A stretch of 64,000 bases of DNA from Lytechinus pictus. Taxonomy: Eukaryota. The notes below the pieces were generated by a model. That model ran no database searches. It was not told the origin of the DNA and saw only the letters and a program-made list of their open reading frames with translations. Positions 35,801 through 56,814 of the stretch are shown in pieces. The translations under genes and the position numbers were made by a program. Positions within the stretch are counted from its first letter, which is position 1; each line of letters starts with the position of its first letter. The DNA lies in contig NC_087253.1 in assembly GCF_037042905.1 (NCBI RefSeq), forward strand, positions 992,001 through 1,056,000. The letters run 5' to 3'.

Positions 35801-38800
35801 AGAGCACTTTTTGACTTTTGGCCGGTCTACTATAACATCCATATCTCTTCGTACGGATTCCTGATGTACGTCTTTGGTGTATGGTTGAACTTCTGAGATA
35901 AACCCTTTGCATACATACCAAATACGTTACAATCTGATTCCACCCAGCTACAGTACGTACAGAGAAAGTTGTTATTTAGTCATTTATGTCTGTCTTTCTT
36001 GCTTTATTTAAACCTTTTCCTGAATGCTCCTGTCTTAGAAATTACTATGAGGGCAAAAGGCATACTTTGAACTTTATTTCAATGCTAATATTATTTGTTC
36101 GGTCATGTACGCCTTTAAAATATAACAACGAATCTACAGGGCATTTCTACGGCGATTGTCGCATCGTCGAGTTTCCTCCGCTGCCCCACGTACTCCTATT
36201 TGTGTAAGTTGAAGGTGAGTCTGATGACGGAGCTCCGAGCTCGCGCGCTCAGCTCATTCACACAGTACAAGCCTCAGCTCCGGACCGTTTTGGAAAAATA
36301 TTAGAATTGACGAATTTGAAGAGATAAATCTAGACCTAACTTTTATGACACTTCCTTGATTATGATCTGTAAATTCTATTATTACCCATTGGGTCCGAAT
36401 ATCAGTGTTTTAAATTGCATTCGATCAACTTTCCCTATCTGATTTACGAGCGGTCTGCGCCTGTGAGTGTGAAAGTGCCGTGATGGACCACCCTGCTCTG
36501 TGGGGATTAGCGGTGCATGGGGGGTGGGGCAAAGCGTTCGAGAGAGCCAGATCTCCTTGTGTTTAATAATAGAGTGTTTTAGGAGCAGTGAACGAGAACG
36601 GCGTAGCAGTCGTCTGATTGTTTGAGTCAACGTCGTCGTCTGCCCTTGCTCACTACAGATGCGAATATTTTAGATTTCACTCGACTTGTACGTGTACGTA
36701 CGTCCACGTGAAACAGCGCGATAACCAGCGGGTCATGACACGCTGCCCAACCCGGAAGATCTGGCGTACCATCGCCTGGCGACCTGGTCGGGTGATGCGA
36801 AGGTGCACACTTGTGCACACTTGCCCTTTCACTTGCTTTGATTCCTTTTTACGTGAGTTAGGATATATATTTCGATGTATATTTTGGAGATCAGAAATCT
36901 ATTTCAAATATGATAAACAAAATGCATCATACAACTCACATTAATTTTGTGAAAAGTCAATGAAAACTGTGTTTTAAAAGGGAAAGGTTGATCTTCATGC
37001 TGAGCTTGAGCGGTTAAAATGACGTCACTCACGTGCACTTCGACTATGATTTAGGAGAACCGCAGAATGAGTGTGGCGAGGTTCTCGATTCTGATAGTCG
37101 ACGTGTGTGAGGACCTGAGGCATATGGCAGGCCAAAAAATGACGTCATCTCGTACCAGTCGTCTTATGTCGACGTACGTTTCTAAAAGTGCTCAATAGCT
37201 CCATGGACCAAGTGATAATTAAACCAAATGAATATTAACCCATACATATACATGTACTCTCCTTCCCTCTGGGTACATGTAGAAAGACTGCTAATCATAT
37301 TATTAGCTTACTATGCATCAATGAACAAACAACATCAGTACTAAACATATGACATTCAACCATACTGCATGAGTAATGACACAATCCAATAATGTGATGT
37401 TTAGCTGTAAGAAGGGCACAGGCCTTTCATGCTTTATATTGGAACATTCGCCCTTTTGCCAGGCATGACACTTTCATTACAACAATCTGTTCAGTTCTCT
37501 AAAAGCTCAAGTATGAAGACAAATACAATACGGGACTATATACATGTATGTACAAGGTATAACTGGTACTTCATGTACATGTACATGAGTGTGGATATTG
37601 TAATATCATCTTCATACAGAAGGAAATTACAACAAAAAAAACTCTTGATTGTCAAATTTCTAATAAAACTATTTGTAAGCATACATATCTCCTAAACTTT
37701 AATGTATTAAACTGAGTTATAATACTGTCAGATCCAGGGGAATAAAATTCCCTGGTCAGATTATATGATGCCACTGGGCTGTTTCAATTATTTCTAAATT
37801 GGCATGATTTTAGAGATATGAAAAAGTTTCAACCTTCTTCAGCCTAGACAGTGTTCTCTGTAGACATGAATTACTGGAATGTTTCCTTTTCAGACAATAT
37901 GAGGCTGTTGCTACATGTATATTGCCTTTTCTCAGTGGCCCTCAAAATCTTTAAAGGACAATCCACCCCTACAAAAAGTTGATTTGAATAAAAAGAAAAA
38001 AAATCCAACAAGCATAACACTGAAAATTTCATCAAAATCGGATGTAAAATAAGAAATTTATGACATTGTAAAATTTCGCTTAATTTCATAAATTAGTTAT
38101 ATGCACATCTGGGTCGGTATGCAAATGAGGGAACTGATGACATCACTCACTCACTATTTCTTTCGCATCTTATTATATGAAATATTCTAATTTTCTCCTC
38201 GTTGCCCTATGAAACAAATTTTTATTTCTCCCCAAACATGTGGAATTACAATCATTTAACATTTTATGGTTCAGTCAAGTTGGTCCTTACTGTCAAATCT
38301 GTAAAACTTGAAATATTATTTAATTCAAACAATAAAAAAAAAAAAAAGAATAAGTGAGTGAAGGAAATCATTGATTCTCTCATTTGCACGTAACTAAATT
38401 GTGCATAAACTATTCTATGAAAAATAATAAAGCGAAAAAAATTAAGATGTCATTACATTCTTATTTTACATCCGATTTTGATGAAATGTTCAGCATTATG
38501 CTTGTATGATTTTTCTCTAATATTGATTTAAATCAACAATTTCCGAGGTGGACTTGACCTTTAAATTTTGAGTTTTATCAACAGCCCAGCTGTTGTACAC
38601 AACTGCTATGTATACCAATGAATAATGATTAGTGCACTTACCTGCTTAACTTTTGACATAGGTCTCCATGTAAAACACGATTCCATAATTATACAATGTC
38701 CTGATCACAAACACCTTCCAATCCAAGATACACTACATGTACTGAGTTCCAATATTGAAGACACACAAAACTTTTCAAAAGACAAACTTTCTCTCCAATC

Positions 38801-41800
38801 ACTAATACAACATCCTTCAAAGGGTACAAATCCAATCTGGCATATCAAATCCTTCATTCCTGTCCACTGCCTGGTCTGCATACACCCACACCCCTTTTAA
38901 TCCCTTTCCCCATTACTTAATCCCACAACTGTACCTCTTCCTACACTGTCTTATCGGAAGTATTTAGATCTACCCTGCCTATTCTCCACAGACGTCATTG
39001 GTAGGTCTCTTGCGGAAATCAGTTGGGAAGCTTCACGTTGACTAATCAAGGGACATTGTCTCACAGAAGTGATTAATTATATCAATTAATAGAGATGAAT
39101 ATTAACATGTAGGCATAACCATTGACTTTGGATCAATGATATCTTACATCCCCCCCCCCCCACTCCAACCCCCACATCCAAAACAATAAGAAGCGGAAAC
39201 AAGATCGATAAACCCCAGAAGAAGAAAGAATTCGGCTTTATGTACATGTCATTGTAGAGTAAAGTTTTGGTACAAAAGGACCAATAATGTGAACTATTGC
39301 AATACTCATCTTACATCCAATCTGACTCAAGTGTGGTTGCCACTGCATTCTTTTTCAGTGACAGATTTCATGTAAAAATTTGAATGTTGAATTTAGTTTT
39401 TAATATCTTTTTTTAGTACCAGTAATTGGATATGAGAGAGCAACATGTGTATCCAAGGATCAATCCTGACATTGTCAGCCTATTCTACACTTGAGTAGTG
39501 GTTTTACAATGTTTATTTTCAAGAATACAAAAATATGCAGATATTGACATTGACATCTACAGCAGGCATCCAATCAAAATAAATGTTCCTATAAAATCGT
39601 ATAGATAAAACATCGCTTTGAGTAAAAAAATAACAATGTGACGTAAGACTCTATCTTCACTTTGAATCACTGGATACTGAAGTAAACATTTAAAGGGTCA
39701 TATAGAGACTAAAATTAGTCACATTGATGAAATCTCCTTCATATCCTGATCTAGAAGTGGGAGTCCTATCAAATCTCAGGCATCAGAATGAAGCAATGTT
39801 CAGACGGGAACAACATAATGTCTTTTCATCAAGAAACAACATGTTTCACCTTTATATCACACTTCCCTACATGTTAGTACAGGGCCTATGTGACACTGAA
39901 ACAAGTTTGGATTTTAGGCAAAAAAAAATTGTTGACTTGGCATAACAGGCCAATGAAAATTTGGGTAGATTTTTTTTGTACATGTACATTTTTAATTTCA
40001 TAAATGTTTACAGTGTATATTGTTTGAATGCGACTACCCGTTCAAGTGCTTCTAAAACTTACAATATCTCCAGCTGTTGTTCATTATCTGTCTAATTTTA
40101 GAAGTGTGCTGAAATGTTGGCAAAGTTGTTATAACGTTATGCATGTATAAACAATCAAATATACAGGACCTATAACATGTGTACATTAATTACTACAGAA
40201 TGTACAAAAATACTTACCCGGTACACAAAAAGCAGAAAAGAATGAGAGAGAAAAATATAATTGAAGATTTTGTGAAATTCCATCAATAAATAACAAAATC
40301 ACTATTTCAAAGTTAACTATAACACATAATTATTATCATCATCAACAAAAACTTGAACATTCATTAAAAATATATTTTTGGATCCTTCATCTCCCAAGAT
40401 ACATACAACCTTCTAGCTCTCAAAGTCCCCTAGTAAATGCCTTTTAGAAGGAACACACAATAAGGGGTCTTGTTTGATTTCAGAACCAATCTTCTCCCAT
40501 CTACCATCATCATAAATTTCTGTCTGTCAGAGCAATAAACAAAAAGTAAATTTCATGCATTCTTGGGCTACCAGCTGGAATGCATCATAGGGTCAAAGTT
40601 CAATTCCAAGTCCAACCAAGTTCAGAGGATTAGTCTCCAAATGCAGACCTACATGTATTGATGAGATTTTTTTTTACATTATCAATATTGTTTTTCAGGA
40701 GAGATGGGGTAACCCACAGAATATAGTCACTCTGCCAGGCAGCGAAGATAGCTAGTTTGTTTAAAAAGAATGTATAACAGAGTCACATCTAAAATTAACA
40801 AGAAAACAAAACAATGAATACTTTGGATGGTTTTCACTTAATTTCAATTAAATGTTAACTTTACATCTTTAATGTGTCATAGCTGGTATGGTCTTTTGTC
40901 TGAATGTAAATCCATGTTGGCATCAATTGATCTGGGATGCTTTCTACAAACATGTATGTGAGGGGGTTCAGATCTCTGATTGAAAAAAAGTTTCAAAATA
41001 TAGACTCACTGACATTGATTGATTACCATGAGTCATTATATGACCAATAGTAATGATACGCTGGATTAGAATAAATCTATTACCAGTATGTTTGAATTGG
41101 AAATCCAATTAGTATAAAAGCTCTGAAGATTTATCTCATACATTGAACCTATTGAGTCTTAATGTTAACAAATTTTCAGAATTTGTTTAAGATCGGTATG
41201 CTCGATCTGTATAGTCTCGTATAGACTTTTTTACTTTCTGATTCTGATCTCACAATAATGAAGTGAGGACGAAGATGATCTCACAAAATTGCGAATTCAA
41301 GATTATTAAGTAAAGGATATTAAATAATCAAAACTAGTACATATATAAAGAATCTTTATTATAGAGTTAAATACCTAAACAGAGCTGTATTATTACTCAG
41401 TCATGTAAACTAGAAGGAATTATGATGCCTAATTTTTGTCTTAGCTTAACTGCTCACTTGCCTTTTTTTTACACAGAGCAAAAAAAAAAAAATGATTAAT
41501 TTGGTTTTTAAATCATCACTTCCCACGGATATAATAAAGGAGGAACAAGTACATGTATGCTGATTTCTTTTGGGAACTTTACTGAATATACTGAAGAAAT
41601 TTGATAACTTACTTCATATTATAAAAAAAATATTGAACAATAAACTGCAATGACATCATTTCAACCAAGATTTATTCTTTTTTAAATGCATAATTTGATT
41701 TTTTTTATGCAATTCTCATGGATACAAAAAATGGGAATCATGATATTGTTGATTTCTTTTGGGAATTCTGCTGAATCGACTGAAGAAAATTGATTAAACT

Positions 41801-44800
41801 TACAAAATATAATTTCATTGTAAACCAACTTTTGAGAACTACTTTTTTAATGATGCATCCTATTTTGCTTCATTCTCATTCTATACTGCCAACCTACAGC
41901 TGGGGTAATAATATCCAAGTCCTTTGGAAGCGCATAGAGACATTATTCATAATGTGATATGCGCTATACAAGAACTGTATATTATTATCATAAATGCCTC
42001 TCTTTATTTTTTGTATGTATCTTCTAATAGTTCAACGAAAATTCAAGCTTCAATATTATGATACAAGACCTTGATATGTGTTTAATAGTCGTCACATGAA
42101 ATATCGTCTATAGATGTAATAATCATGTATCACTCTTTTCATATCAAACAAATAAAATAAAATCTGATATCATAGTTGAAGGCTGTGCATAAAGGTCGTG
42201 CTGCACTGTAAAAAATATTGGGTAAAGTTTTAACCAGCACGAGGGTAATTATGTGTCCAACCAATGTGGGGCAGTATTTTACCCAATGCGGGAAGCATAT
42301 TGTCCAGTAAGATAAAAAATAAGCAGCAATTACTTTAGAATGGGCAAATTTTTTATTAAACTGGATAGAAAACAAGTGGAATGCCTCTGGCAGTGTCGCC
42401 TGCATTATACAATTCGATATAGCAGCAGTGCTGCCTTTGAAAAACGGCTAATGAATAATTATTCACAGAAGAAAACACTATAAATATGATAATAAAATAT
42501 GTCCATTGACCATGATCATGTGACCCAAGACATGTGCAAAACAATCATTCATACTTTATTTCCTTTATGTCGTTTCATGAGCTAGATCCATAAACTTTCT
42601 ATAAAGTAATGATGCCAATTCAACGCATACTCCCAATACGGCCAGAGTTTATTGTTCTTTAAATGACCTTTGATCTTGGCCATGTTCCTGAATGCAAACA
42701 GGGTATTCAGGGATACACTGCTGCTCTTATGTCCAAGTTTCATTAACTCGATCCATAAACTTTTAAAGTTATGATGACAATTCCACAAATATCCCCAATA
42801 TTACCAAAGTTTGATGACCCTAAATGTCCTTTGACCTTGGTCATGTGACCTGAAACTGGCACAGGATGTTTAAGGACACCTGATTGCTGTTACAATGTAT
42901 GTCCAAGTTTCATGAACTCGATCCATAATATTTCAAAGTTATGATGACAATTCCTCAAATAACCCCAACATGGCCAAAGTTTGTTGACCCTAACTGACCT
43001 TAATCATGTGACCTGTAACTAAGGCAGGATCTTCAGTGATACACTATTACCTTTATGTCTAAGTTTAATTAACTAGGTCCATATACTTTCGAAGTTATGA
43101 CATTTCAAAAACTTAACCTTGGTTAAGATTTCGATATTGATTCCCGCAACATGGTCTAAGTTCATTGACCCTACATGACCTTTGACCTTAGTCATGTGAC
43201 CTGAAACTCAGGTAGGATGTTCAGTAATACTTGATTACCTTTATGTGTAAGTTTAATGAACTAGGACCATATACTTTCTAAGTTATGATATACATGTACA
43301 TGTAGTCTCGATCTGCCCATAAGAAATGTCACATGTTGGTTGGACACATAATTGCCCACATGGAGCATTTTTACCCAATATTTTTTAGAGTGTGGCTAGT
43401 ATAAACGCCAATTGTGATAACGATCTGAAAGTAAAGTGATTGTAGTAGAAACTGTGTTATTTGCTGAGAAATTAAAAAAAGCGTGGCATTCAAGCCAGAT
43501 ATCAGATCTTTTTTCCAAGCAATACAACACTGTCCTACATGTGTAAAAGTGTCGGTTATCTTCTGTGTGGTCATTATTTTGAGCTTAAATAGGTTTCCTG
43601 ATTTTACTGAGTTAGATTTATGTAAATAGACCAGGGTCCTATAACACAAAGATCAGTGATTAATCGTACGATTGTACATTGTAGTCATTGGGATCAATCA
43701 GAGAAAAATGTTCTATGATCATTGCTAAGCTTTGTGTTACACGCCCTAGATCTAGGTGTACCATGATATGGTGACAATAAACCTTGATTGTATAGACTTT
43801 GTCATGAAATCATTGTTTGCTGCAACTACTTTCATTTTTCAGTTACATGTATAATATAACAACTGTTTCATGTGATTGACAAGATGATTGCTGAAAAGCC
43901 TGATAAATCATTGCCATCACATCAGTCAAGTGCTGAGATTGCCCAGAAGTTCTCAAGTGTTTTTACAGTAAAATTCAACATTTGATATCTTCATTTTCTT
44001 CCTCTACTATTGTTGTGAAGGGGGAAGCCTGTGATCACCGTATTGAGAAGTTTGCGCCAGTTTCCCAAGCAGATGTACTAAAGATTATCAGGTCACATAA
44101 AATAAAATCATGTGACCTAGATCCTCTTCCAGCGCTAATTCTTAGCCAGAGTCTAGAGCTCCTGGTACCGGCCATTACGGACATTACCAACGATTCACTA
44201 GAATGCGGAGTCTTCCCTTCGGCACTCAAATCTGCTTTGGTCATTCCCACCCTAAAGAGACCGTCACTGGATGCAGAAAGTTTAAGGAACTACAGACCAA
44301 TTTCAAATTTACATTTTTTGGGTAAGGTAATAGAACGAGTTGTCTCAAATCAATTTACTGAATACCTTACTGCTAACTCCCTTCTCGCATCCAGACAGTC
44401 TGCATATCGAAAAGATCATAGTGTGGAAACTGCGCTACTTCGTGTTCAAGATGATATTCTACAAGCTTTGGATACCGGAGATGATGCTATCCTCATACTT
44501 TTGGACCTAACATCAGCCTTCGACACAGTTGATCACGATGTTCTTCTTTCCAGGCTGAAAACACGATTTGGTGTCTCTGGGATTGTAGCAAAGTGGTTTG
44601 ACTCTTACATCACTGGACGATATCAACATGCAGGTGATCATTGATGGCTCACGATCTGATCCTACTCTACTTAAATGGGGAGTGCCGCAAGGTTCGGTCA
44701 TCGGGCCTGTACTCTTTACATGCTACACGACACCGTTGGAAGATCTTATTCATTCCTATGGTTTCTCGTCTATGATATATGCTGATGACACACAATTATT

Positions 44801-47800
44801 TATCACATTCAAGTCTGGACAAGCTCTCCGAATGTTGCAGAAACTGAAAGATTGTCTTGGTGCCATTCGTTCCTGGATGACTGTGAACTATGTACTCCTT
44901 AACGATAACAAGATGGAAGTCCTGCATATCTCCTCCCATCGTAGACATACCCCTGAGCTACATGTACCTCCAATTCAAATTGCAAATGTTCATATACATC
45001 CCTCTAAAACGGTAACTAACTTAGGTGTTTTGTTTGATAAAAACTTTTCAATGCATCCCCATGTAAACAGCATCTCTCGTAAAGCATCCTTCGCCCTAAG
45101 AAAAATTGGTAAAATTCGAAAATATCTCTCAAAGTCATCTACTGAAGTCCTCATTCATGCATTTATTAGTTAACTTCTTGACAGTTGCAATAGCCTGCTC
45201 CATGGAATTCCAGAAAAGGATATTTCTAAGCTGCAGAGAATTCAAAACTCTGCAGCCCGTCAAGTTTCCCTCACTAAAAAACATGACCATGTAACACCTA
45301 CTCTTAAACAATTGCACTGGCTCCCCATTAAATTTTGTATACAATTCAAAATTCTACTCCTAACATTCAAATCTCTTAATGGACATGCTCCAAAATATCT
45401 CTCTGAATTAATCCAGGTATATACATGTACTGTACTCCCAGTAGGTCTCTTCGTTCCGCAAATCAAAATTTTCTAACAGTCAAAAAACCAAAAACTAAAC
45501 TTTTGGTGATAGGTCCTTTTCAAGCTCTGCCCCACGTCTGTGGAACACTCTTCCAGCTTTTCTCCGTTGTATCCCAAATATCACTTCGTTTCGATCTAAT
45601 TTAAAGACGTACCTCATGAAGAAAGCATATTCAACATAGCCCCATTTACAGTGTCCTTGATTTTTTATTTTATTTTTATTTTTTCCCTAAGTTATATGAT
45701 TTCTAATTTCACTTTCGTTTGTATATTTCGTATGTTCTACATTGTAAAGCGCTTTGATATGATTTCATAAAAAGCTATATATAAATCTAAGTTATTATTA
45801 TTATTATAACCATGGGTCCATAGCATCACTAACTGCTGGTTGTATTTGGATCCTAGTAGGGTCCATGCTTATTCATAGCATGATAACTTGTCATATTAGC
45901 CCCTTCGATATGAATGAGCAGTGATGCGTTACCATGGTAATCAGAGGATACACATCACTGACCAAGCCAGCTGGAGAAGATATCAGATATACATGTATTA
46001 CCATTCCTCTATAGTCTCTAATTTACAAATCACTTGATATGATCCATGGTATCGTGGCGATATGAATGTTAAAAAGTTCTGTTTTTTATTTCCAGAGTGG
46101 ATTACTTTTCATCAACAATAAGTCTTGGGTCAAAATACTGAGATTGTTTGTTTGTTTTTGCAGAGTATTGAAATTCTAGCAAAACTCTGGAAAATGCCAC
46201 AGTAAACATTTAAAACATGAGTGTCGCTAAGGCGAGCACATAATACGCCCGCCTTCAACATGGAAAATTGAGTTATTGGTCAAGCAAGAAAAGTGGAAGG
46301 TGGTGACTTCATATTTGACTGTCTGACCTCAAAATCAATAGAATTCCTGGGATCTATGCTAGGATCATGCACATCAAATTATATAAGCCTTGCATTTACA
46401 AGGACTGCAGAAGGCAGGGCTCCACACTAACACTTTTTTTTTACTGGTCCAACCTACATGTATTCATGTTGGACCAGTTGATACCCAGATTTTTAATTTT
46501 TTACTGGTCCAAACCTAAAATTTACTGGTCCCCAAATTAAAGGAAATCATAAAGACTTGTTTTTTTTGCTGTCTTTTATTGCCCCCCCCCCCAACACAAA
46601 CGCAACATTATTCATGAGAACCATTTCTCAATTTTGGAAAACCATTTTTTAAGGTGCCAAAGCTATTTTTATTATTTACTAAAGAGAAAATATCATTTAT
46701 ATTAGATTGATATATTTTTTACTGGTCATGTCAGACCAGTATATCTGGCTATTTCTGAAAAAGTTACTGACCCAACAGCAATTTTTACTGGTCTGGGACC
46801 GTCGGACCAGTGCCAGTGTCGCGCTCTGCAGAAGGGTAAGATGAAAACATGTCACTGTGACCTTGACCTTTTACCTTTTGACCTCAAAATCAATAGGCTT
46901 CCTGGGATCCATGCTAGTATCATACACACCAAATTATATGAGCCTAGGTTAAGTTAAACTGAAGTTATCACGTTTACAAGGACTGCGGAAGGGTAAGATG
47001 AAAACATGTCACTGTGACCTTGGCCTTTGACCTTTTGTCCAAAAAATCGATAGGCTTCCTGGGATCCATGCTAGTATCATACACACCAAATTATATGAGC
47101 CTAGGTTAAGTTAAACTGAAGTTATCACGTTTACAAGGACTGCAGAAGGTTAAGATGAAAACATGTCACTGTGACCTTTAACCTTTTGACCTCAAATCCA
47201 TGCTAGTATCATACACACCAAATTATATGAGCACAGAGCATGATACCATAATACGTCTCGTCTAGGACGGGCGTATAAAAAACTATAAATGTACATATCA
47301 AGACCTGGGGGCCTGTTTCTTAAAGGTAACAATTGTTGTAACTTTGACATTATGGCAACTACCATGGTAACCTTGATTTTGATTGGCTGCTGAGCCCTGT
47401 TGCCATGGTAGTTGCCAGAAGTTATAACAGAAGTTACAACAGTTGCAAGTCCTAATATGAAATGGTCCTCTGGATCCCTTTAACATGAGCAAGAACAGTA
47501 TGAGGAGAAGATAGATAATAGGTATAGAAAAGACGTCAGAATTGATTGGTTCTAGGTAGATTTAGCTCCAAGTGAATCAATAGTCGGCAGGGGTCATGGG
47601 CAGGATACAGGCTTATCTATCGATTGATCCTACCCAAGCTCATATCAAAGAAATCTATCATGGGATAGGATATTAAGAGAGTGATGTGGAAATCAAGAGG
47701 AAGAGGATTCTTCAAAGGGGGTAGGATGATACAGATATAAAAGGAAAAAAAATACAAGAAAACTGAAATCATACTTGTTTAATGCAATATAATCCATTCA

Positions 47801-50800
47801 ACAAATTATATAACCTTTTTGTTCTGAATTTCTGATTATGAAGTTTGTTTCAAGTTCAAAGCTCCCCATCTTTTAATAGCAAAGATTGTTTAATAGGTGT
47901 TTCAAAATAGGGGAGGGACAGCATTTCAATAAGAGTACGCATCAAAATTATTAAGAATAATACATGTACAAAATAATATTTAAAGATAAGAGTTTGGAGA
48001 TGATATAAATTGTTAAATATATTTTTTTAGATATCCAGAATGAATGGTAAGTCTACATTACCTTTCTTTCATAGATCTTCACATCCTCCCCCTACCCCTT
48101 TAAGAATTTCTTCTGTGCTCCTTCTGTCTCCAGCATGCCTGGCTACCAGCTTTCTATCATATTATATTCCTCTCCTTCCAACTTGCTGATAATTCCCTCA
48201 TCCTCCAATCTGCCTTAATCTCTCCCTTCCATTATCCCTAGGTGGTTTCAAACCGCCTCGATCACAAGAATCCCCGTTAAATTACGAGAACTTTTTTAGG
48301 CTGAAAAATACCCATTAATTATTCCTGCATTCACACCGCCCTGAAACATACCCTTCGGGATAAGTTCCTGAAGTTACGAGCATGCGCAGTATGGTCTGAT
48401 AAGCAGCAAGGCGCGAAATTCAAAATCACTAGCCCAGCAGCAACCCATGCACGGCGCCGCACCCAACGACACGCTGGGCTAAAAGTTCCCGTAATTTGCT
48501 TTCAGACCGCCAAAATACCCACGACCTTGGAAAAATCCCCGTGAAAGTTCTCGTAATTTCGCCAAGTACCTACTATTTATCGGGTATTTTCTTTCGGGGA
48601 TATTACGCGTAGTTTGCTTTCAGACCGCCAAAATACCTGGTATTTTCTGATCGGGGTAAATTTCCCGATCAGAGAATACCTGGAACTGGCGAACTTTGAG
48701 GCGGTCTGAAACCACCTCCTGAATACCTTCCTCCCTCCTTTGGTTTCCTCTTCCTGCTCCCTCTATCTCCTCTTCTTCCCTTCTTTCCTCTGATTCTTCC
48801 TAATCTTTCCATCCATAACATGCGCCCTTCCCTCTGTCCCCCTTTTATTTATAATTCCTTCTCTTTCTATCTCTCCATTCTTTCCATCCCTCCCTCATTC
48901 AGTCCAGATAAACTCCCCCGCCCCCCCCCTTCAACATTTTTTCCCCCGTTGTCACTTGTCATTAACTATCCACAGCTATAAAAGACATCGTGTTCATGTA
49001 AATTTTAAGAGGAAAATCTCAGAACTGAAATGAAATCCAAGGTGAAGATCTCCTTAATAATAAAAGCTTTCAACAATTGCTGTTTTATGAAAGCAATTTT
49101 CATTCTATACAAATGTCATTGTTTAATGTAAACACAAACCAATTTGCTAAAAAGAGACTGTCTCGTATTATTGACATTACTGGGGGTGCTGATTACTTCA
49201 TAATATTAATATTTGCCAACAGTATTTGTTGAACACAAGAGGGTAAATACCATTCAAGAAATGTTCAAATATGTTTATGATAATATCCTTACAATGTGAG
49301 TTCCATGTACACACAATAAACACAGAGTGAATGGGGGTGATAAAGATAAAACATTTTGATGTGATGTTATTTTAGAATGTTGTTTGTAAAATTGGGGCAA
49401 TAAAAGACAATGTGTTTTATTTACTGGTTGGTACAGGATATTCATAAACTTTTTAGAGAGTTATATTCTGCATGGTATAAAAATATAGCATAGCATGTTT
49501 TTTCTTCTTCTTCCTACATGTACATGCACTCTTCTTTCCATATCAATTTTCTATTCTCATGTTATATCTCTCTCTTTCTTCCCAATCCCCCACTCTTACA
49601 ACTTTCTGTCTTTCTCGCACTCTCTGTCTCTCAACTTTAATTTAACTTTTGTTAAATTTTGGAATGAAAAAGAATAAATGCAATCACTCAATCAATCAAT
49701 CATGTTATACAATGTATGTTTTAATCTTATTCTGGGATTGCCCTTGATAAGCATCTTTGGTTTTTGGCAATTCCTCCATATTCAGGTACATATATGTTTT
49801 GTTTTCTTTGGTTGTTCTTTGTAATGTTTTAAGCTTTTGATATTGCTATTTTTTTTATTTTTGTCATTTTTCAATCAACTCTTGTTTGTATTATTTATCA
49901 CGTTTTTTATATTGTTCGATTCGAATATTGAAATAAATGAATTGAATTAAACTGAAAATAACACATGAACTATAAATAAAACACCTACATGTAGGTAAAT
50001 ATACAATGCATGTGAGGTTTATTTAGATACACTGTACGTTATGTAAGTATGCAGTGTGCATAAAAAAAATAGAATTGTTAAAGCCTAATTTTGAGCTCTA
50101 TCATGGCAGTGAGAAATCTACATGTTAATAAGAAATGTAGCTAAAAGAAGGAAATGTTCATCTACTGGGAAAACCACAATATGGCATTCTTTTTGGTTTA
50201 AGAATAATATTATGTATGATGATGTGTGAACGTTGCCTTGACTCCTATATCAGCCATTACTTTCATTCTATTGTTATTCATCTATTGTGATGCCTAGTAA
50301 AGGAAACATGTTTCCCTCACCAATGCATTGCTTTCCCATCATTCCTGAACGCATGCATCGCCATGTCAACACTGTAGTCGGGACGTCAACCTTGTAAAGA
50401 GCATAATGCATTACAAGAACTCAAAACATGTTTCTAACCTCAAATGGGTGATAATTATTAAAAATTAGGTTTGACAGATCAACTATTAATTTTGTACAAA
50501 TTTTTTCTTTTATTTATTATTTATTTATCTATTTATTTTTATATTAATTTCCACCCTTTTCTTGTTAGCACAAAATCTCAAAAACTCCTCCATCAATTTC
50601 CTTTAAGATTTTGATCAGTTTAATGCGGATCTATTATGCCATGTACTGTTCAAGGTCAAAAGGTAATTGTGACATCATCTAGGCACCATTTTGTAAAATC
50701 ACATTATCAATCATATCTTCAATATAAAAAATAAATCATATTCACATCATATCAACTTCAGGTCAAATGTCAACTACCCATGTCATCAAAATCATGATGA

Positions 50801-53800
50801 GGTCATGAAAATTTTTTTAAATGCTAAACATCACTTTTTGACCAATTAGAGTACGTTTCAGGTCATTTTAAGCATTTCAAAATTTTGCACGCACGAATAT
50901 GAGCGTGTCACACCGTTAAACAACATACATGTAGTATTGCAGTTTTTTTATCATTATTATTTGTAACATTATTCTGAGGAATTTGATACCTTGATCAACA
51001 TGCTAGTATCAGTAATAAATCAATTAGCCTCAATCAAAGTTTGACGCACACGCATACCACAGGCAATATTTTTCTTATTCATTTTCATATTTTGAAAAAG
51101 GAATATGTAAAAAGCACAGGTTGAAATAAATAATAAAAGAATAATTCTAGTGTGTTATAGAGTGTAGGCTAAAGATACAGCTCAAGATGAAAATATTTTT
51201 TGACACCACAAGTAGTGCACTGGGAATTCATATTTTGAAGATTCAATGCCTATCATAATTTTTAACTTAAAATTCACAATATATTTCTGGTTGTTTGATG
51301 AAAAGATACAGCGATGTATTGAGTATGGAACCCCTTTAAATGATATGATTATAATTGCTGTTTCATAGTTAATTGCACTGAATCACAACAAACAATTTAA
51401 TAAAATAGTTTTGAAACCAATCATAATTGTGGAACTCCCCTGAGCACATACCGGTATACATGTACATGGTAGGCCTACATCAACAATATTTTACTGCAAT
51501 AACCCTTCAAAGAGCACTTTCATGACATTAAAAATGTACGCATACATAACATGTAGTTTCATTTTCATTGAATCGAGACTGTATAACTCTAAGGGGGAAA
51601 ATAATGATGTTGTTTTGAAACTTATTTGAAATATGAATTGTTAATTGAGAGTGGATAGTGGATACATGTGCATATCAAATACATTGAGCAGGTCATAAAC
51701 CTAAATATACTATGATACTTTTTGAAAGCTGCAACATAGACTGTACAAGTAAATGTACTTTTTTTTTTGGTGAATAGGCCATATAAAAAGTTATGAAGAA
51801 TTGCAGCCAAACATAACATCAAAATCTTACCTTTTTATCCCCAAGTAGACGTACGATGTACTGCCTGGTAGAATCCTCTACACGATCATGAAGAAGGTTC
51901 TCCTCTCCGTTCTCTATCGCTCTCTCTGCCGCGAAGCGTAGTTCTGAAATGAGTCGCGGAACGTCTGCGTGTGATCCGTTTTCTTTTGGATGTGTGATGT
52001 TAACTTGATTATTAGTAACTACTGGTCCATTATCATAGTCCATACCCTGTAGCCTGGTACCTACAAGAAATAGACGGATAAAAATAAAATATCCATCACA
52101 AACAAATTATCAACACCCATCATAAAAAGTACATCCGGGCTTTAAAAAGAAATTAAATTCCAATATTTGACTGGCGAGCCACACAATGAATACCCTCCCT
52201 CCTTCTTAATCTTTCTCTCTCTCTCTCTCTGGAGAAGTTTAACTGTCTTCCATATTTTTTAATCAATATTTTCTGAAACTTTCACATATATATAATCTCT
52301 AATGGATGGTTAATGTAGCACTAATGATTTTCAGTTTCACAGTAAAATTACCCATTCTCCATACCTTTATAGCCTGGTACCTACATGTATCTACTTCATG
52401 AAAATACCAGAAGAGATTTTTTTTTTAAATCAAGGAAAAAATCTTAATGTAGAATTATTTCAATAAGTTTAGGCCTTTATGTTCCCAGTAAGAGATCAAG
52501 GTTTGACCAAGTGCAGACATTCAGTTTGCTCAAATGCTACAGTAGCCTAAATTCCTAAAAGACCTCACAACTTGTCTACATGATGTAGACAAATGTATGA
52601 GGTGTTTTAAAAATTACAAAATACTTTTTTAAAGTTATAAATTGCACTTGACTTGACAAGAAAGAACCAATGAAGGTCTGTGCCTGTAGACTACATGTTG
52701 TGATAACTGTCTATTGCTATAAATATTAAGTGTACTTCATCTTGTAATGACCATCCATAATGACACTTAATATGTATTCTCATTGGTACTAATGATTTTC
52801 AGTTTCACTCATTAATTTTTTTTTAACGGAAAGTCTTTTCTAAAACATGCGTTTCAGATCTGGGGCCCGTCTTACAAAGAGTTTTTATTGATTCGATCAA
52901 TCGCAACTATGGAAAGCCAGCGAAGTCAACATCTTAAAATGCATGTTTGTTCAAAAATAATTCTTGATATGAAGTATATTCATAAATTCATTGATTTCTT
53001 GATTTCTTGACAATTTGGTGTGTTCTCCTTTGTTTATAAAGGACATTTTGCAAATTTCCTGTACAAAAAATGACACTGATGGATTTCCATAGTTACTATT
53101 GATTGGATCAATCGTAGCTTTTTGTAAGACGGGACCCTGAAGTAATTTTCACTGACAAATTTACTCTCAGCCAATCAGATGCAACGGTTTTCAGTAGCTT
53201 ATAACAGATAGTCAGTGAAATGGGAGCGCCAAGGAGTCCAGTATCAAAACAGGCGTGAGTGATTATTCATGCCCATGTATGGCATGGAATTTATCAATTC
53301 TGTGATACATGTACAGTACATTCAAATAACATGGTTTTAAAAGATTTTGTTGAGCTACACTGTTGTAGGTTTTAGGAACCATGCAGAAGAGTGAAAGGTT
53401 TTTAAAGAACTTAGAAATGGGACAGAAAATTTCAAAACTCTCATTTCAATTTATAAAGAAGATCTACTGTACATGTACAAACAAATGTCCTGTACTGATG
53501 TAGATATTTTAATGAATTAAAACAAAAGTTCAGATAATTTATCAGTTTGCCATGACATACAATAAATACAGACAGTAATTACTCACTTCCATCTGTCTCC
53601 TGGTTGATTCACAACAAATAACACAAATCACCAAACATTCCAAGATATAATGATCGTATTCCAAACTACATGTATGTTCCTATAACTAGTTCAGAAGCAT
53701 TAAAACATAAGCGTACAAGTAATACATACAATGTAATGTACAGTATGTTCTCTCTGTAAAATACCATAACAATTGCTCACATATTGTATGAGCGCAGTGA

Positions 53801-56426
53801 TGACAAAAGTTTCTCCCGTATTTGTATTAATCTACACTGCAATACCCACATTCAAGTCCCCTATTGTGTCAAATCCTGAGTTTAGAACCCGTAGAAGGTT
53901 GCTATAATTCCCCTTTCTTTCTTTTTTTGCCCTGTGGGTTTTCTTTATCTCTCATGCATGACATCAAAATAGACCTGTTTTCATCAGGCCTGTCAAATGA
54001 TTTTTACAGACAAATTTGCTCTAAGCCAATCGTAATCCCGGATTTCAGTAGCTTATAACAAATTGTCAGTAAAAAATCACCATTTGTTTCATGGAATGCT
54101 CCCCAGATTTCATCAGCACTACATTTGTATTATTAGAAATACTGTAAACTGATACTGATCTGACAAACTCACTCAATAAAATTAATATCCTAACAAGACA
54201 TTGATAACCACCATTAATTGTCATTGTTTGCCAAATGTTTTCATTGGGCATCATATCTACACATGTTCAAAGCACAAAGTATTTGATATTCAAATAAAAC
54301 AAGAAAAAAATGAGAGTGCGACATCATTGACTTGCTCACTTGTAAATCACCTGCAATGTGCATATAAATGTTGTAAAACTGAGCTTAATTTATAAAATGT
54401 CATAACTTTCCAAATCCAATTTTTTTCTTCAATATTTCTCAACTTTATTCATCATATTTTATTATGTAGAGGTGGAGTTGAGGCTATTAAAAAGAAGTTG
54501 TAATGCTGAGTAGGATTGATCAAGAACTCAAGGCTTTCAAGAGCTAATAGAGACTGATGGAAACATACAACAGAATGAATACCGGTAGTTAGAATGTAGG
54601 GTAATGACAGTCAACCTGAAAGATAGATTTATATGATATCAATCTTTGTGGATTTTTTACATTCATAATAAATGATTGTGAGTTTTTGTATTGAATTTTA
54701 TCAATTTCATAGAAATTCTCCTGAAAAATATGAGATTATATCATAGCAGAATAACAAAAGTAAAAACTGCTACATGTACATGATGCATGATATGTCAATA
54801 TTGTTGAGTCTTTGAACATATTAATACTGTACTCTAAATTTCTAAAACTATCATGAACAATCTACTGCACTGTAGGCCTATATCATTACAAAAGTTATCA
54901 AACTGAGCTTGTACAGTTTTAGTTGTCTTTTTACTTTACTTTTAAATCTCCAAGATTTTAGGCAATTCAGACGGAATTTATCTGAAAATTTTGTACCCCA
55001 TAATTTTCTTCTCTCATACATATGCACACTGAACATGTATGATCATTGATGGTATTCATCAAAAGAGATGAATTGCAAAGGCGAGGTAACTTCAATTGTG
55101 ATTTCCTAAAAATAGTTCAACACCCTATCTAGCATACCTGATAATATGATGCAAAAGAAAATATCAAGGAATATATGTGTAAAAGATGATGAATATGACA
55201 ATATAACGAGTCAGTGGAGACTATTAATTACATCTACATGCCTCATAGGTTTGGTACAATCCCCCTACTATACCAGCTCATAGGGTAATCCCATACCCAT
55301 CATACCAATAAAGGAGAACACCCTGCTGCCAAAAATAGCTTAAACAGAAAAATCACAGCGAAGGAAAATTATCATTGAGCTTTTGGAATAATTTTGGTCA
55401 CCTACATGTAGTACCGTATGAAACCTGGGGATGTTTCACAAAGATTTAAGTATGACTTGGAGTCACACTCAAATGCTTTAGTTGCGTGCTGTAAAAAGGC
55501 ATGACTGCATTGGTCAGACTATCCCAAGAGAAAGATCACTACTGTGTATTATAAATCCATGCGTCTGCATTAAAGTGCGACTCTAAGTCATACTTAAATC
55601 TTTGGTTTTAAAACGCCCCATATAGCCCTTGCCATCATTAGCATTTCAACAGGCCAAGAATCCAGATGGAATTGGTAATGTACATGGTTTAAGGTATGAC
55701 TGACATTGCACCAGTGATTGTAGTTTGGCAGGATGTGAATCAATGCTGTGAATCTCACGAATGATCCTTAAATCCTACCATCATACCATTACTCATCCAA
55801 CAACAATTAGACATTGTGCGTTACCACAAAAGAAGATTGGATATTTTGGGAGATTCTTTATCTAAATCTGTTTTACAAAAGTTAAAGTTGATCGACTCAT
55901 GAAGTCAATTCATTCATCCATCAAGTGATTTGGTCATTTATTTATACTTTAATTCATTCTTTTTATTAAATTTCTTTCTCAATATTCACATGAACAAACA
56001 TTCATTAATTCATTCATTCTGTCTTCATTCATTATTCTAAATTCCATGGATTTGCAGGTAAGTATGAGAAATGTGAATTCTCAACAAGTTTGGAGAATTC
56101 TCTTTTTTTAATTTCCCCTCACTGACAATAATACAAAACTGCTTGTTTGAAAATGGGGGTTAAATTGTTATTAAAAAAATAACTAAGGTCTATTTTCTGT
56201 TACTGAAATAAAGTTCCTAATTCCTATATTCATCTAACTTTATTATAAGTTGTATAAAGGAAGAAAACAAGTTAAACTGCTGCAAATACGATTAGTGACA
56301 AAATTTTAAGAAAGCTATGACAACAAATGGTTCAATAAAAAATCACATCTTACCTGCTATGATATCATCCATCTGTTCAAGAGCAGCAGCCAACATCTGG
56401 CTCGCATCTGATGCTAAATTTGTCAT
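2689..56426 (-). CDS. PPFIBP1: Liprin-beta (PPFIBP1/2-like) gene, 5' partial, 16 coding exons in window; 3' SAM-domain exons outside window
   Basis: Spliced translation gives liprin-beta hallmarks: MTNLASDASQMLAAALEQMDDIIAG, RLEGDKDSLQLQVNVLTDQIEAQNEKIQELE, KIAVDSLIVGNKEKDKTIEDL and SFGKGLFKITSKKTSSAPNL. All introns are GT-AG and phases are consistent (2167 nt coding in window). Family recognised from memory of vertebrate liprin-beta; PPFIBP1 vs PPFIBP2 cannot be resolved. Confidence 0.9.
2890..3550. repeat. GA-rich low-complexity tract (polypyrimidine on the pre-mRNA strand)
   Basis: (GA)n runs and purine bias directly upstream of the exon 16 acceptor. Confidence 0.85.
4069..4632. mobile_element. 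Harbinger-like MITE interrupted by a SINE
   Basis: TIRs ggccctgtgttacaaa / tttgtaagacagggcc; uninterrupted inverted sister copy at ~52863-53136. Confidence 0.75.
4216..4512 (+). mobile_element. tRNA-derived SINE, full length
   Basis: A-box tggcccagtgg, B-box ggttcgaatcc, central cactcaacccaggtg..aatgggtacc block, gcgctatacaag..(tta)n tail, TSD tatgaat(g/a)ta. Confidence 0.88.
5450..5570 (+). mobile_element. SINE internal fragment
   Basis: gctgcactcaacccaggtgaagtgaatgggtaccc..ttccttgaa matches the SINE at 4216. Confidence 0.7.
7303..7965 (-). CDS. PPFIBP1: Liprin-beta large linker exon 15 (663 nt, likely alternative)
   Basis: Inside ORF 7102..8022; ccttacag|NETPSD...KKTTDSE|GTAATC, phase 0-0, Pro/Ser/Thr-rich. 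Confidence 0.8.
9087..9797. mobile_element. Non-autonomous TIR element
   Basis: Inverted repeats caattctcgctaccccaaatag / ctatttggggtagcgaaaattg; CpG-rich interior; no clear TSD. Confidence 0.65.
9834..10564. mobile_element. hAT-like non-autonomous transposon, copy A
   Basis: TIR tagggacagtgattttccg, subterminal aacgga repeats; inverted homolog at 32117-32900. Confidence 0.82.
10710..10832 (-). mobile_element. SINE fragment with Deu-domain-like core
   Basis: Reverse strand reads ccctcggataggacgttaaatggaggcccc, resembling the DeuSINE core as I recall it. Confidence 0.5.
11201..11378. mobile_element. Short Harbinger-like MITE
   Basis: ggtgagtgtttcctaaag / ctttaagaaacatccacc ends; internal inverted ttatgaacgactggtga / tcaccagtcgttcataa. 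Confidence 0.6.
12286..12438 (-). CDS. PPFIBP1: Liprin-beta coding exon 14
   Basis: RQVPQGSSPVSPDRDF...RRSASLENLQTNVVPST|GTAAG, 153 nt, phase 0-0; a second in-frame CAG acceptor lies 6 nt inside. Confidence 0.82.
12687..13089. repeat. Local tandem duplication (2 diverged copies of ~190-210 bp) abutting the exon 13 donor
   Basis: atttatttgtggtttgcat..gggggatacatatggcagat..tgctttagagattactt occurs twice. Confidence 0.85.
13090..13187 (-). CDS. PPFIBP1: Liprin-beta coding exon 13
   Basis: (V)DMDMLLDIENQRTDSFSTSSSATGETDTSKDS|GTAAGT, phase 1 to 0. Confidence 0.82.
13913..13991 (-). CDS. PPFIBP1: Liprin-beta coding exon 12
   Basis: DKTIEDLNQRLSKFYHVQEMAAINGR|GTAAG, phase 0 to 1. Confidence 0.88.
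14698..14759 (-). CDS. PPFIBP1: Liprin-beta coding exon 11
   Basis: (E)VEKEKLKIAVDSLIVGNKEK|GTGAG; resembles the vertebrate liprin-beta AVESLMAANEEK segment. Confidence 0.88.
14980..15300. repeat. (GAA/GAG/GAT)n purine-rich simple repeat
   Basis: Seen directly; explains ORFs at 14946-15340. Confidence 0.9.
15343..15391 (-). CDS. PPFIBP1: Liprin-beta coding exon 10
   Basis: tttttcag|ALLDDLQSKKVKTLDE(E)|GTATGT; phase 0 to 1, required to put the next exon in frame. Confidence 0.82.
17890..17940 (-). CDS. PPFIBP1: Candidate liprin-beta cassette exon 9 (51 nt)
   Basis: cattttag|KKPRKQKRLFFHMPSRP|GTAAGT, phase 0-0, about 90 AG-free nt upstream. Confidence 0.55.
18412..18566. mobile_element. Short MITE with CCAAT and X-box-like motifs
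   Basis: Inverted sister copy at ~47307-47468 and a related copy at ~29182-29323. Confidence 0.7.
18815..18877 (-). CDS. PPFIBP1: Liprin-beta coding exon 8 (63 nt, possibly alternative)
   Basis: ccccttcctggtag|VKLVRSQTETAELKARLRYSH|GTGAGT, phase 0-0, GC-rich island in an AT-rich intron. Confidence 0.7.
19390..19522. repeat. (AAT)n microsatellite
   Basis: Seen directly. Confidence 0.9.
19546..19608 (-). CDS. PPFIBP1: Liprin-beta coding exon 7 (63 nt)
   Basis: ttttcttccag|KTVGDLQSECHKWQEKYMETQ|GTATTT, phase 0-0. Confidence 0.8.
19886..21554. mobile_element. Tc1/mariner(pogo)-like non-autonomous element, TA TSD, with a nested MITE
   Basis: TA|ccgtaagtaatggtctattaaccgcac ... gtgcggtttatagtccgttacttacgg(g)|TA. 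Confidence 0.8.
20330..20913. mobile_element. TTAA-TSD MITE (Kolobok/piggyBac-like) nested in the mariner-like element
   Basis: ttaa|aggagaat...attctcct|ttaa; long imperfect inverted arms (gagcatttgaat..gcgaccaagatct..tgatgtcac). Confidence 0.85.
22190..22352. other. Assembly gap
   Basis: Run of N. Confidence 1.
22430..22492 (-). CDS. PPFIBP1: Liprin-beta coding exon 6 (63 nt)
   Basis: tttcacag|SKIEEQQQEMNKLMSKYQQSQ|GTTAGT, phase 0-0. Confidence 0.8.
22577..23005. mobile_element. MITE with apparent 6-bp TSD
   Basis: cagtag|cagacctgccaacc ... ggttggcaggtctg|cagtag; subterminal aaaacgta repeats. Confidence 0.85.
23538..23688. mobile_element. Degenerate pogo/Tigger-like MITE
   Basis: cagtcaaacctgt ... 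acaggtttcactg|ta. Confidence 0.55.
24198..24615. mobile_element. PIF/Harbinger-like MITE, TTA TSD
   Basis: tta|agcccccatcacacttattcggaatc ... gattcggaataagtgatgggggct|tta. Confidence 0.85.
24949..25080 (-). CDS. PPFIBP1: Liprin-beta coding exon 5
   Basis: ESEIHCELEQSQQNYAVEASKLKARLDSVENETLVVRERAIMAE, 132 nt coiled coil; GAG|GTAAAT. Confidence 0.88.
25185..25376 (-). mobile_element. tRNA-derived SINE (second family)
   Basis: Reverse: ggcgcaatagctcagtcggtagaac..ggttcgtttccc..gtgccctttggtaaggcat..ccctcggagagaac..A-tail. Confidence 0.78.
25629..25742 (-). CDS. PPFIBP1: Liprin-beta coding exon 4
   Basis: VNVLTDQIEAQNEKIQELEYACAKKSKELADSETKLLQ, 114 nt; ttttcag acceptor, GTATTG donor. Confidence 0.92.
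26050..26227. other. Assembly gap
   Basis: Run of N. Confidence 1.
26251..26325 (-). CDS. PPFIBP1: Liprin-beta coding exon 3
   Basis: ELATSPGSNEKMKRLEGDKDSLQLQ, 75 nt, phase 0-0; conserved RLExDKxSLxLQ. Confidence 0.9.
27976..28591. mobile_element. Bipartite repeat: ~140-bp hairpin plus an adjacent inverted-repeat-bounded body
   Basis: attatattgactggc..acatcaaatatgtcgc / gcgacatatttgatgt..gccagtcaatataat, then attattaccta..taggtaataat. Confidence 0.65.
30183..30577. mobile_element. TTAA-type MITE
   Basis: ttaa|agataaattccagtt ... aactactatcatttagct|tta; partial related copy near 1180. Confidence 0.7.
30581..30855. mobile_element. PIF/Harbinger-like MITE, TTA TSD
   Basis: tta|aggcttggtcccactg ... 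cagtgggaccaggcct|tta. Confidence 0.85.
31274..31695. mobile_element. Bipartite repeat (hairpin plus body), same architecture as 27976
   Basis: attatattgaatggct..aataccagaaaaattcc / ggaatatttctggtatt..agccatccaatataat. Confidence 0.55.
32117..32900. mobile_element. hAT-like non-autonomous transposon, copy B (inverted relative to A)
   Basis: tagggacagtgattttccg ... cggaaaatcactgtcccta. Confidence 0.82.
33797..37205. mobile_element. P-superfamily-like non-autonomous element, 7-bp TSD, 3.4 kb including nested insertion
   Basis: gaccaag|catggagctattaacac ... gtgctcaatagctccatg|gaccaag. Confidence 0.78.
34079..35832. mobile_element. Academ-like foldback element, TAA TSD, nested in the P-like element
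   Basis: taa|tagtagaccggccaaaa ... ttttggccggtctacta|taa; ~215-bp inverted arms and an internal ~450-bp direct duplication. Confidence 0.78.
37955..38560. mobile_element. TTAA-TSD MITE (Kolobok-like)
   Basis: ttaa|aggacaatccacc ... ggtggacttgacct|ttaa; long inverted arms ttcatcaaaatcggatgtaaaataag. Confidence 0.85.
41899..41990 (+). mobile_element. SINE 3' fragment
   Basis: ggggtaataatatccaagtcctttggaagcgcatagagac..gcgctatacaagaactg. Confidence 0.8.
42204..43392. mobile_element. CACTA/EnSpm-like MITE (TG TSD) containing a minisatellite-bearing Helentron-like insertion (~42370-43290)
   Basis: tg|cactgtaaaaaatattgggtaaa ... tttacccaatattttttagagtg|tg; internal ~165-185-bp repeats with tgaccttg..catgtgacc..aagtttcatgaact. 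Confidence 0.75.
43870..45808 (+). mobile_element. 5'-truncated, decayed L2/CR1-group LINE (reverse transcriptase pseudogene), antisense to the host gene
   Basis: ORFs 43982..44644 and 44598..45173 carry NYRPISNL, LLDLTSAFDTVDH, GVPQGSVIGP and YADD; frameshifts and stops; 3' gtaaagcgcttt..ctatatataaat..(tta)n tail. Confidence 0.93.
46213..47281 (+). mobile_element. Helentron/HINE-like element with ~158-bp tandem array
   Basis: 5' aaacatgagtgtcgctaaggcgagc; repeat units near 46830, 46987 and 47145; 3' hairpin atacgtctcgtctaggacgggcgtat followed by an A-run. Confidence 0.7.
46415..46828. mobile_element. hAT-like MITE nested in the array
   Basis: cagaagg|cagggctccacact ... agtgtcgcgctctg|cagaagg; many tttactggtcc subterminal motifs. 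Confidence 0.78.
48240..48717. mobile_element. PIF/Harbinger-like MITE, copy A, CCT TSD
   Basis: cct|aggtggtttcaaaccgcctc ... gaggcggtctgaaaccacct|cct; close inverted copy at 59772-60247. Confidence 0.9.
51831..52060 (-). CDS. PPFIBP1: Liprin-beta coding exon 2
   Basis: ttcttgtag acceptor; (G)TRLQGMDYDNG...LISELRFAAE...IVRLLGDKK; AAG|GTAAG; phase 1 to 0; overlaps ORF 51819..52043. Confidence 0.88.
52863..53136. mobile_element. Harbinger-like MITE (empty sister of 4069-4632)
   Basis: ctg|gggcccgtcttacaaa ... tttgtaagacgggacc|ctg. Confidence 0.8.
55427..55619. mobile_element. Harbinger-like MITE
   Basis: ggggatgtttcacaaagatttaagtatgact / agtcatacttaaatctttg; sister copy at 58458. Confidence 0.75.
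56354..56426 (-). CDS. PPFIBP1: Liprin-beta coding exon 1 (ATG; exon extends 5' to acceptor at 56489)
   Basis: MTNLASDASQMLAAALEQMDDIIA(G); donor G|GTAAG, phase 1; upstream acceptor ttctttccatttgatag. Confidence 0.92.
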
Positions 56427-56430
56427 CTTT

Positions 56431-56444
56431 GTCGCTATGGTAAC
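56431..56444. promoter_or_regulatory. RFX X-box consensus match just 5' of the start codon
   Basis: gtcgctatggtaac; another match gttgctatggaaac at 57497-57510. Confidence 0.35.
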
Positions 56445-56814
56445 ACTAGTTTTCTAACAGATTAGAATGAATTCTGAAGCTTCATGTACCTATCAAATGG
56501 AAAGAAATAAACAGAAATCTAATCGTTTTATTTCTTGATGTGTTTTTTATTAAATTTTCAGGAATTTCACTGCAAATCACTTTAACAACTCATTATCAAA
56601 TTAATTACTATCAATATTACCGGGTAATTCAAAAGAATAGATTAATCTTAAACTTGAAAAGAGGAAGGTATATTTCAATAGACAGTTTATCATGTTCAAT
56701 TCCCTTTTTAAAAAAATATTGAAAAAAATAAAGATAAACCAGTGCATTTTAAAAAGTATATTTGTATCAACATAATTGTGCAGCAGACATACTGCCTCAG
56801 GGAGTAGAGTACAT

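Follow-up and report, generated by a model that had tools for sequence, protein, structure and literature searches.

Excess of the palindrome TA-CATG-TA in a Lytechinus pictus locus points to widespread excision footprints of Tc1-type transposons

The stretch of DNA considered here, referred to as the window in the rest of the paper, comprises 64,000 nucleotides (nt) of the sea urchin Lytechinus pictus (RefSeq assembly GCF_037042905.1, contig NC_087253.1, positions 992,001 to 1,056,000 of the forward strand). Dispersed across it are 54 copies of the eight-letter palindrome TACATGTA (0.84 per kb), which we discuss as a putative excision footprint, or scar, of Tc1-type transposons. Several copies lie in repeats, among them a long interspersed nuclear element (LINE) with matches to RVT_1 in two frames and many 5'-truncated paralogs. 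In the feature lines below, a strand is given where one was assigned, and the evidence stands last.

1..64000: dispersed TACATGTA words, n = 54; 3 to 7 per 4 kb between 28 and 56 kb
43858..45813, + strand: 5'-truncated LINE copy (RVT_1), host of the scars at 44959 and 45422; Pfam RVT_1 and extent of paralog homology

An original prediction, made from the letters of the sequence, had put the number of copies at roughly 50 by eye against an expectation of 2-3, and all twelve of the TACATGTA positions it quoted proved right to within 1 nt. The expectation amounts to 1.74 copies (maximum 8) in dinucleotide-preserving shuffles of the window and to 1.7, 3.2 and 4.9 copies under Markov models of order 1, 2 and 3, respectively, and the enrichment thus survives the order-2 and order-3 backgrounds. 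With the motif masked, the expected number is 2.55 (order 2) or 2.91 (order 3). We relied on these lower orders and on the motif-masked background and set aside the maximal-order Markov expectation, which is uninformative because the sub-words of TACATGTA themselves carry the excess. Of the 256 TA-NNNN-TA words, TACATGTA alone has a large excess in the window, and it tops the over-representation among non-simple 8-mers there; CATG between other flanking dinucleotides shows a small excess at most, and the half footprints TATGTA and TACATA are not enriched.

The whole genome (812 Mb in 368 contigs) holds 224,046 copies of TACATGTA, compared to 85,448 of the reversed word ATGTACAT and to about 29,000 expected from our own composition estimate. 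The window is approximately three times denser in the word than the genome mean (0.28 per kb), and the transposable-element-rich loci that we fetched for comparison carry only 0.12 per kb. We also came across a very dense cluster of TACATGTA at G000:C1:497800-516000, where matches of the class with A at -3 alone number about 30 in 19 kb, some copies lie 6 nt apart and the next megabase is sparse, such that scar density is strongly regional.

The word is real sequence, because a contig of the independent run X17 is identical to window positions 33200-33824 across three TACATGTA sites, with zero differences, and because six sites recur on a separately assembled copy of the locus (see below). Compared with the run contigs, 33200-38800 is mostly repetitive. 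A palindromic binding motif under selection in introns, or an assembly or sequencing artefact, would agree with the perfect palindromy of the word and with its being denser in this putatively gene-rich window than genome-wide; the chance of either is close to negligible in our view, since the same 6-nt gain arises in dead LINE and repeat copies and since the word is found both in contigs of independent runs and on two separately assembled copies of the locus.

Nor does the excess reflect one dispersed repeat family, because the 30-nt flanks of the 54 sites are mutually unrelated and an all-against-all BLAST of the window and 59 other loci (268 kb in total) returned any paralog for only 8 of 79 sites. 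Sites that do have paralogs allow the direction of change to be read, and four of them are as follows.

44959..44966: TACATGTA scar, private gain of 6 nt in the same LINE copy as the scar at 45422; 10 to 21 paralogs lack exactly 6 nt at the TA
45422..45434: stacked scar TA-CATG-TA-CTG-TA that breaks the LINE frame; frame restored without the extra 11 nt at 45424-45434
46455..46462: TACATGTA in a high-copy repeat, private gain of 6 nt, also present in the copy of the locus on contig C27; 37 of 38 paralogs exactly 6 nt shorter
13063..13070: TACATGTA in one unit of a local tandem duplication of about 195 nt; partner unit has a plain TA at 12855-12856

In the LINE, 45387-45422 translates to APKYLSELIQVY and 45437-45457 to PSRSLRS, with a split Thr codon and the 11 nt of 45424-45434 lying between the two stretches. 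It had been proposed that deleting CATGTA and CTGTA (45424-45434) restores a conserved motif, and this is exact: the 11 nt are absent from 29 of 29 paralogous LINE copies, all of which read ATA|TAC, and the LINE paralogs do not already hold the 8-mer. Another LINE copy (L014) carries a private 6-nt gain of TACATGTA without counterpart in 25 to 28 paralogs, and a further gain (L029) was judged against three paralogs of a different repeat. The length comparison at 46455 spans 103-110 nt around the site, and the units of the tandem duplication around 13063 read cagcTAtgctttagag in one and cagcTACATGTAtgctttagag in the other. All five TACATGTA sites judged against repeat paralogs (44959, 45422 and 46455 in the window and two elsewhere, with 3 to 37 paralogs each) are insertions of 6 nt at an older TA, and none of the tested sites with informative outgroups arose by substitution. 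The claim that the words are later 6-nt insertions at a TA therefore holds in every informative case. Among private insertions of at least 4 nt in the LINE family, about 4 of 20 are of the scar type and most others are ordinary tandem duplications.

A minority class is inherited by repeat copying: the words at 35188 and 35229 also occur in other copies of their host miniature inverted-repeat transposable element (MITE), including a copy in another species' run. These two sites, along with a longer word of which three of the four window copies lie in one repeat family (TACCATGGTA, see below), would suit the view that most copies ride passively inside dispersed repeats containing TACATGTA. We find this very unlikely in light of the unrelated flanks and the few sites with paralogs, and in light of the absence of the word from paralogs wherever these are plentiful.

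Positions ~1,227,600-1,246,560 of contig C27 form a colinear copy of the locus with 94-98% identity to window positions 37195-53408. This copy is probably the other haplotype, left unpurged; its identity to the window fits the difference of about 5% between individuals implied by the low fraction of words shared with other runs. Missing from it are the LINE (43858-45810) and a repeat of 479 nt (48239-48717), and the roughly 3.7 kb between its positions 1238936 and 1242635 are additional to the window sequence. Site states on C27 were read from the length differences of short queries and from explicit predicted alleles. Two stretches of scars in the window differ from their C27 counterparts:

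43291..43304: double scar TA-CATG-TA-CATG-TA; C27 is 12 nt shorter over 125 nt
51449..51477: scar hotspot in which TACCGGTA, TACATGTA, CATGG and TAGGCCTA run together, four units; C27 is 6 nt shorter

The predicted empty allele of the double scar has a single match in the genome, free of mismatches, at C27:1235188-1235209, C27 having a plain TA exactly where the window has TACATGTACATGTA. In the hotspot, the allele predicted to have one CATGTA fewer at 51457 was found at C27:1244618-1244638 with one mismatch (C-to-T). Among the 14 sites compared, six have the same length on C27 and are thus common to both copies (37249, 37274, 46455, 49986, 50926 and 52382), three differ, two lie on the LINE that is present only on the window's own contig, C9, and three show other length differences: C27 is 2 nt shorter at 47961, 19 nt shorter with 76% identity at 49515, and 9 nt shorter at 53306, where a search for the predicted allele without 11 nt gave no match. 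The LINE (43858 to ~45810) is absent from C27, as homology breaks off at the 5' junction of the LINE and picks up again beyond the element, in agreement with coordinate arithmetic, and this C9-only element bears two TACATGTA scars and one CTGTA. A high-copy repeat at 43236-43291 (653 candidates) ends exactly at the TA of the double scar.

Tandem forms such as those at 43291-43304 and 37565-37590 raise the question of hexamer slippage, in which a TACATG microsatellite would be seeded and expanded by replication slippage. The one-unit difference at 51457 could be slippage, and the reversed word ATGTACAT is about 3-fold enriched genome-wide, mostly via overlap with tandem forms. As a general account slippage is nevertheless highly improbable: the founding CATGTA is inserted at a bare ancestral TA that offers no local template, and slippage can explain neither the ANNTANNT-like flanks nor the other palindromic cores, both described below.

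A Tc1-type scar must be a palindrome between two TAs, because the ends of the element are inverted repeats. In the window, palindromic TA-N4-TA words other than TACATGTA and those with AT-only cores number 28 against 8.1 expected, including five copies of TAGGCCTA, four of TACCGGTA, six of TAGATCTA and four of TAACGTTA, compared to 78 observed and 82 expected for the 82 non-palindromic TA-N4-TA words. When flanked by dinucleotides other than TA, these palindromic cores have ratios of 0.6-1.9, and TAGGCCTA accounts for 33 of 100 TASSSSTA matches sampled from the genome. Other families with other terminal dinucleotides probably add these rarer TA-palindrome-TA scars. Palindromic additions derived from hairpins were discarded as a source, since neither CA nor TG repeats the flanking letters.

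Scars also share their TAs: six pairs of scars (at 21443, 22083, 43291, 45422, 53306 and 53465) have a TA in common, where random placement predicts 0.32. The stacks not listed above are the following.

21443..21456: stacked TA-CATG-TA-CCGG-TA
22083..22096: stacked TA-GATC-TA-ACGT-TA
53306..53318: stacked TA-CATG-TA-CAG-TA; C27 copy 9 nt shorter
53465..53477: stacked TA-CTG-TA-CATG-TA

Some of these stacks contain a 3-nt core, corresponding to the word TAC(A/T)GTA. In the window this 3-nt type is only 1.8-fold enriched, and a polarised insertion could be read in two single cases, at 45430-45434 in the LINE and at 35212-35216 in the MITE:

35214..35220: TACAGTA, window-private gain of 5 nt at a TA in a MITE copy (3-nt type); contigs of four runs omit 5 nt at 35212

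Nearby, a window-private gain of 4 nt (TGTA) at 35232-35235 directly follows the TACATGTA at 35229 and gives TACATGTATGTA; this gain represents a half footprint (TA-TG-TA) or else a tandem duplication of 4 nt. The surrounding 1,757-nt element (34076-35832) is a non-autonomous DNA transposon (Harbinger/PIF-like), nested in another repeat and polymorphic as a MITE, with an 18-nt perfect terminal inverted repeat, subterminal inverted repeats of about 195 nt and a TAA duplication. Contigs of three runs join 34075 straight to 35833, showing that related copies without the transposon exist.

Two other words did not enter the count of independent scars. TACCATGGTA occurs 6,642 times genome-wide compared to 629 times for its reversed control, a 10-fold excess, and in the window at 18463, 29264, 47360 and 45930. 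Three of these four copies, those at 18463, 29264 and 47360, occupy an identical position within a single repeat family, and in two of the three repeat-borne copies the sequence after the word is inverted relative to each other. TACGCGTA at 48604, 59878 and L008:947 has identical flanks in inverted copies of one repeat and is thus repeat-borne. A repeat of about 1.06 kb at 60637-61698, with dozens of genome copies at 95-99% identity, belongs to a very young family and contains no TACATGTA.

A search of the genome with Pfam DDE_3 gave 729 candidates, of which 150 were scored; all 150 exceeded the cut-off, most with an uninterrupted 364-amino-acid frame. The Tc1-like copies that we fetched are about 99.5% identical. 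The element measures 1.9 kb, the first ~38 nt of its two ends are inverted repeats, and it encodes a 342-amino-acid protein, at L033:1060-2085 in one copy, with HTH_Tnp_Tc3_2 (PF01498, 6.8e-19) and DDE_3 (PF13358, 7.9e-20) domains, whose nearest Atlas clusters are Tc1/Tcb1 transposases. All 44 ends examined of this young family read TA|CACTAC...GTAGTG|TA, that is, CA...TG termini flanked by TA, and the extra letters of the scar, CA and TG, are the terminal nucleotides of these two inverted ends. The TA-flanked end occurs 548 times genome-wide, corresponding to about 275 elements, so that intact Tc1 transposases with CA..TG ends, for which a search had been suggested, are indeed resident. Within the 64-kb window we found neither a Tc1 transposase remnant nor a copy of the young element; with 0.84 scars per kb and zero elements, the window is in line with the estimate of roughly one event per kb, far in excess of surviving copies. 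Many young copies are head-to-head pairs of transposase frames 1.2-1.7 kb apart (L031-L060; for example G000:C9:712162-714088 and C7:40028258-40029962), whose outer ends lie 1.5-4.3 kb from each other, about 1.9 or 2.9 kb being typical. These pairs are 'twin' or rearranged elements that keep both TA-flanked ends.

We then treated each scar as two half-sites and compared the flanking composition with that of all TA sites in the window and of the young Tc1 insertions.

A at -3: scar half-sites 55% (p = 2e-6); window TA background 33%; young Tc1 insertions 59%
C at -3: scar half-sites 7%; window TA background 18%; young Tc1 insertions 0%
T at -1: scar half-sites 6% (p = 3e-10); window TA background 31%; young Tc1 insertions 2%

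Genome-wide, the flanks of TACATGTA have A at -3 in 51% and C at -3 in 11% of cases. Part of the A at -3 comes from tandem forms (ATG-TACATGTA), and by our own estimate from genome and window matches it still amounts to about 45-50% without those. Sleeping Beauty target sites have the majority consensus ANNTANNT, in which the best conserved flank positions are A at -3 and T at +3 (PMC8934666). The flanks of the scars match this Tc1/Sleeping Beauty preference, which the insertion sites of the resident family likewise display.

Tc1 and Tc3 transposases cut with a 2-nt stagger. In the mechanism that we propose, an element would integrate at a TA and duplicate it, giving TA-element-TA. At excision, cleavage of the non-transferred strand by the transposase would fall 2 nt within either end, so that TA plus CA would stay with the left flank and TG plus TA with the right, and end joining without resection would produce TA-CATG-TA, a net gain of 6 nt at the old TA. 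Repeated cycles would have built up the approximately 2 x 10^5 scars of the genome, and scarred TAs hit again would give the stacks. In the case of Sleeping Beauty the cut is staggered by 3 nt, the overhangs make up the footprint and repair proceeds by end joining (PMC7827188). We put at roughly 85% the probability that TACATGTA is the excision footprint of Tc1-type (IS630-Tc1-mariner) cut-and-paste transposons ending CA...TG, a reading that brings together the excess, the 6-nt polarity at TA, the empty allele, the target signature and the resident elements with matching ends. Elements of the resident type, cutting with a 2-nt stagger, would have made the scars.

Several points weigh against this reading. 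The link between scar and Tc1 excision is drawn from anatomy, as opposed to an observed excision or a pair of element and scar alleles. There are about 700 scars for every copy of the young family, and the young family shows A at -1 in 86% of cases versus 43% in the scars; because its preference is so much stronger, it is not the sole source, and most scars may derive from older or other families. The near-exclusive retention of 2 + 2 nt, with no excess of TATGTA or TACATA, implies unusually uniform repair. The rarer palindromes call for additional, putative families ending GG..CC, GA..TC or AC..GT, and arrays such as TACATGTACATG-NN end without a TA and need a second step. Finally, the 3-nt type has no genome-wide excess (82,422 TACAGTA and 82,994 TACTGTA versus 154,920 and 155,347 for the controls). 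Of the scar types named in the original prediction, TA-CATG-TA is thus upheld by both its excess and its polarity, whereas TACTGTA/TACAGTA is borne out by the two polarised cases and fails in bulk.

Some of these points would fit a different origin, in which another TA-specific insertion process, such as a pogo-like or other lineage duplicating 2 bp, or a nuclease coupled to end joining, made the scars and the resident Tc1 family is a bystander. The weaker preference of the scars at -1 relative to the young family is compatible with such a process, as are the enrichment of several palindromic cores for which no matching elements were identified and none searched for, and the fact that excision is deduced, not observed. 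We consider this origin unlikely, since the resident Tc1 family has termini identical to the inserted CA and TG, since the ANNTANNT signature is that of Tc1-type integration and since we know of no other process that makes CATG de novo between duplicated TAs.

If TACATGTA is a Tc1-type footprint, its decay gives an age. One-mismatch neighbours of TACATGTA number 66 against 50 expected, compared to 54 against 2.6 for the exact word. The excess of neighbours is therefore about 0.3 of that of the exact word, which corresponds to a mean decay of approximately 0.037 substitutions per site, a noisy estimate in keeping with the comparison of the haplotypes. Roughly one third of the tested scars, or more, are not shared by the two 94-98% identical copies of the locus. 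We take the scars to be young and the process to be probably ongoing, a Tc1 family of 99.5% identity with an intact transposase being present. From a rough count of about five C9-specific scar units in ~16 kb over ~2% lineage divergence, scars would accumulate at this locus at something like 1-2% of the rate of substitution per site, itself a rough figure.

The footprint of Tc1 and Tc3 in Caenorhabditis elegans results from a 2-nt staggered cut and leaves the junction TA-CA-TG-TA. The scars described here are alike in lying at a TA, in keeping both TAs and two terminal nt of each end, in their palindromic junction and in the gain of 6 nt, and the resident elements likewise have a Tc1-type transposase (HTH_Tnp_Tc3_2 and DDE_3) and CA...TG ends. 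They differ in that about 2 x 10^5 footprints are read from genome sequence and not from revertant alleles, and in that the stagger is predicted. With Sleeping Beauty they share the TA target, the A at -3 and the T at +3 (PMC8934666), as well as an end joining that keeps the overhangs (PMC7827188); unlike Sleeping Beauty, whose 3-nt stagger adds 5 nt and leaves TAC(A/T)GTA, the L. pictus genome shows that word without genome-wide excess and with single polarised cases only. Excision footprints of Stowaway/mariner-like MITEs were reportedly found by comparing rice genomes (PMC4423477). The two cases resemble each other in that comparison of related genomes reveals the footprints of elements that target TA, and differ in that here an animal genome has a single footprint word as its top complex 8-mer. 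The mechanism is textbook; the scale, recency and regional density are new, with the proviso that we found no description of such an excess of TACATGTA in an open literature that we covered incompletely, so that novelty is not proven.

The mobility of cut-and-paste transposons is usually hard to trace, since a count of their copies does not reveal turnover. Here the copies of one word would directly tally past excisions, about 2 x 10^5 in number, and at this locus at least a third of them would be younger than the split of the two copies. Transposon flux, regional preferences, target-site re-use and the share of the indel spectrum would become measurable from sequence alone. The resident 342-amino-acid transposase is a candidate for a naturally active Tc1 element, and work on this species that models indels, aligns sequences or calls variants should allow for TA/TACATGTA polymorphisms. 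More tentatively, and less likely than not in our view, Tc1 excision repair could be a leading and ongoing source of small gene-body insertions, running at roughly 1-2% of the per-site substitution rate in this locus, with re-hit TAs acting as self-reinforcing hotspots and the scars forming a dated genome-wide map. If this is true, the map of past transposon positions would be hundreds of times larger than the set of surviving elements, and if scar density follows germline transcription or chromatin state, it would also record germline chromatin over evolutionary time.

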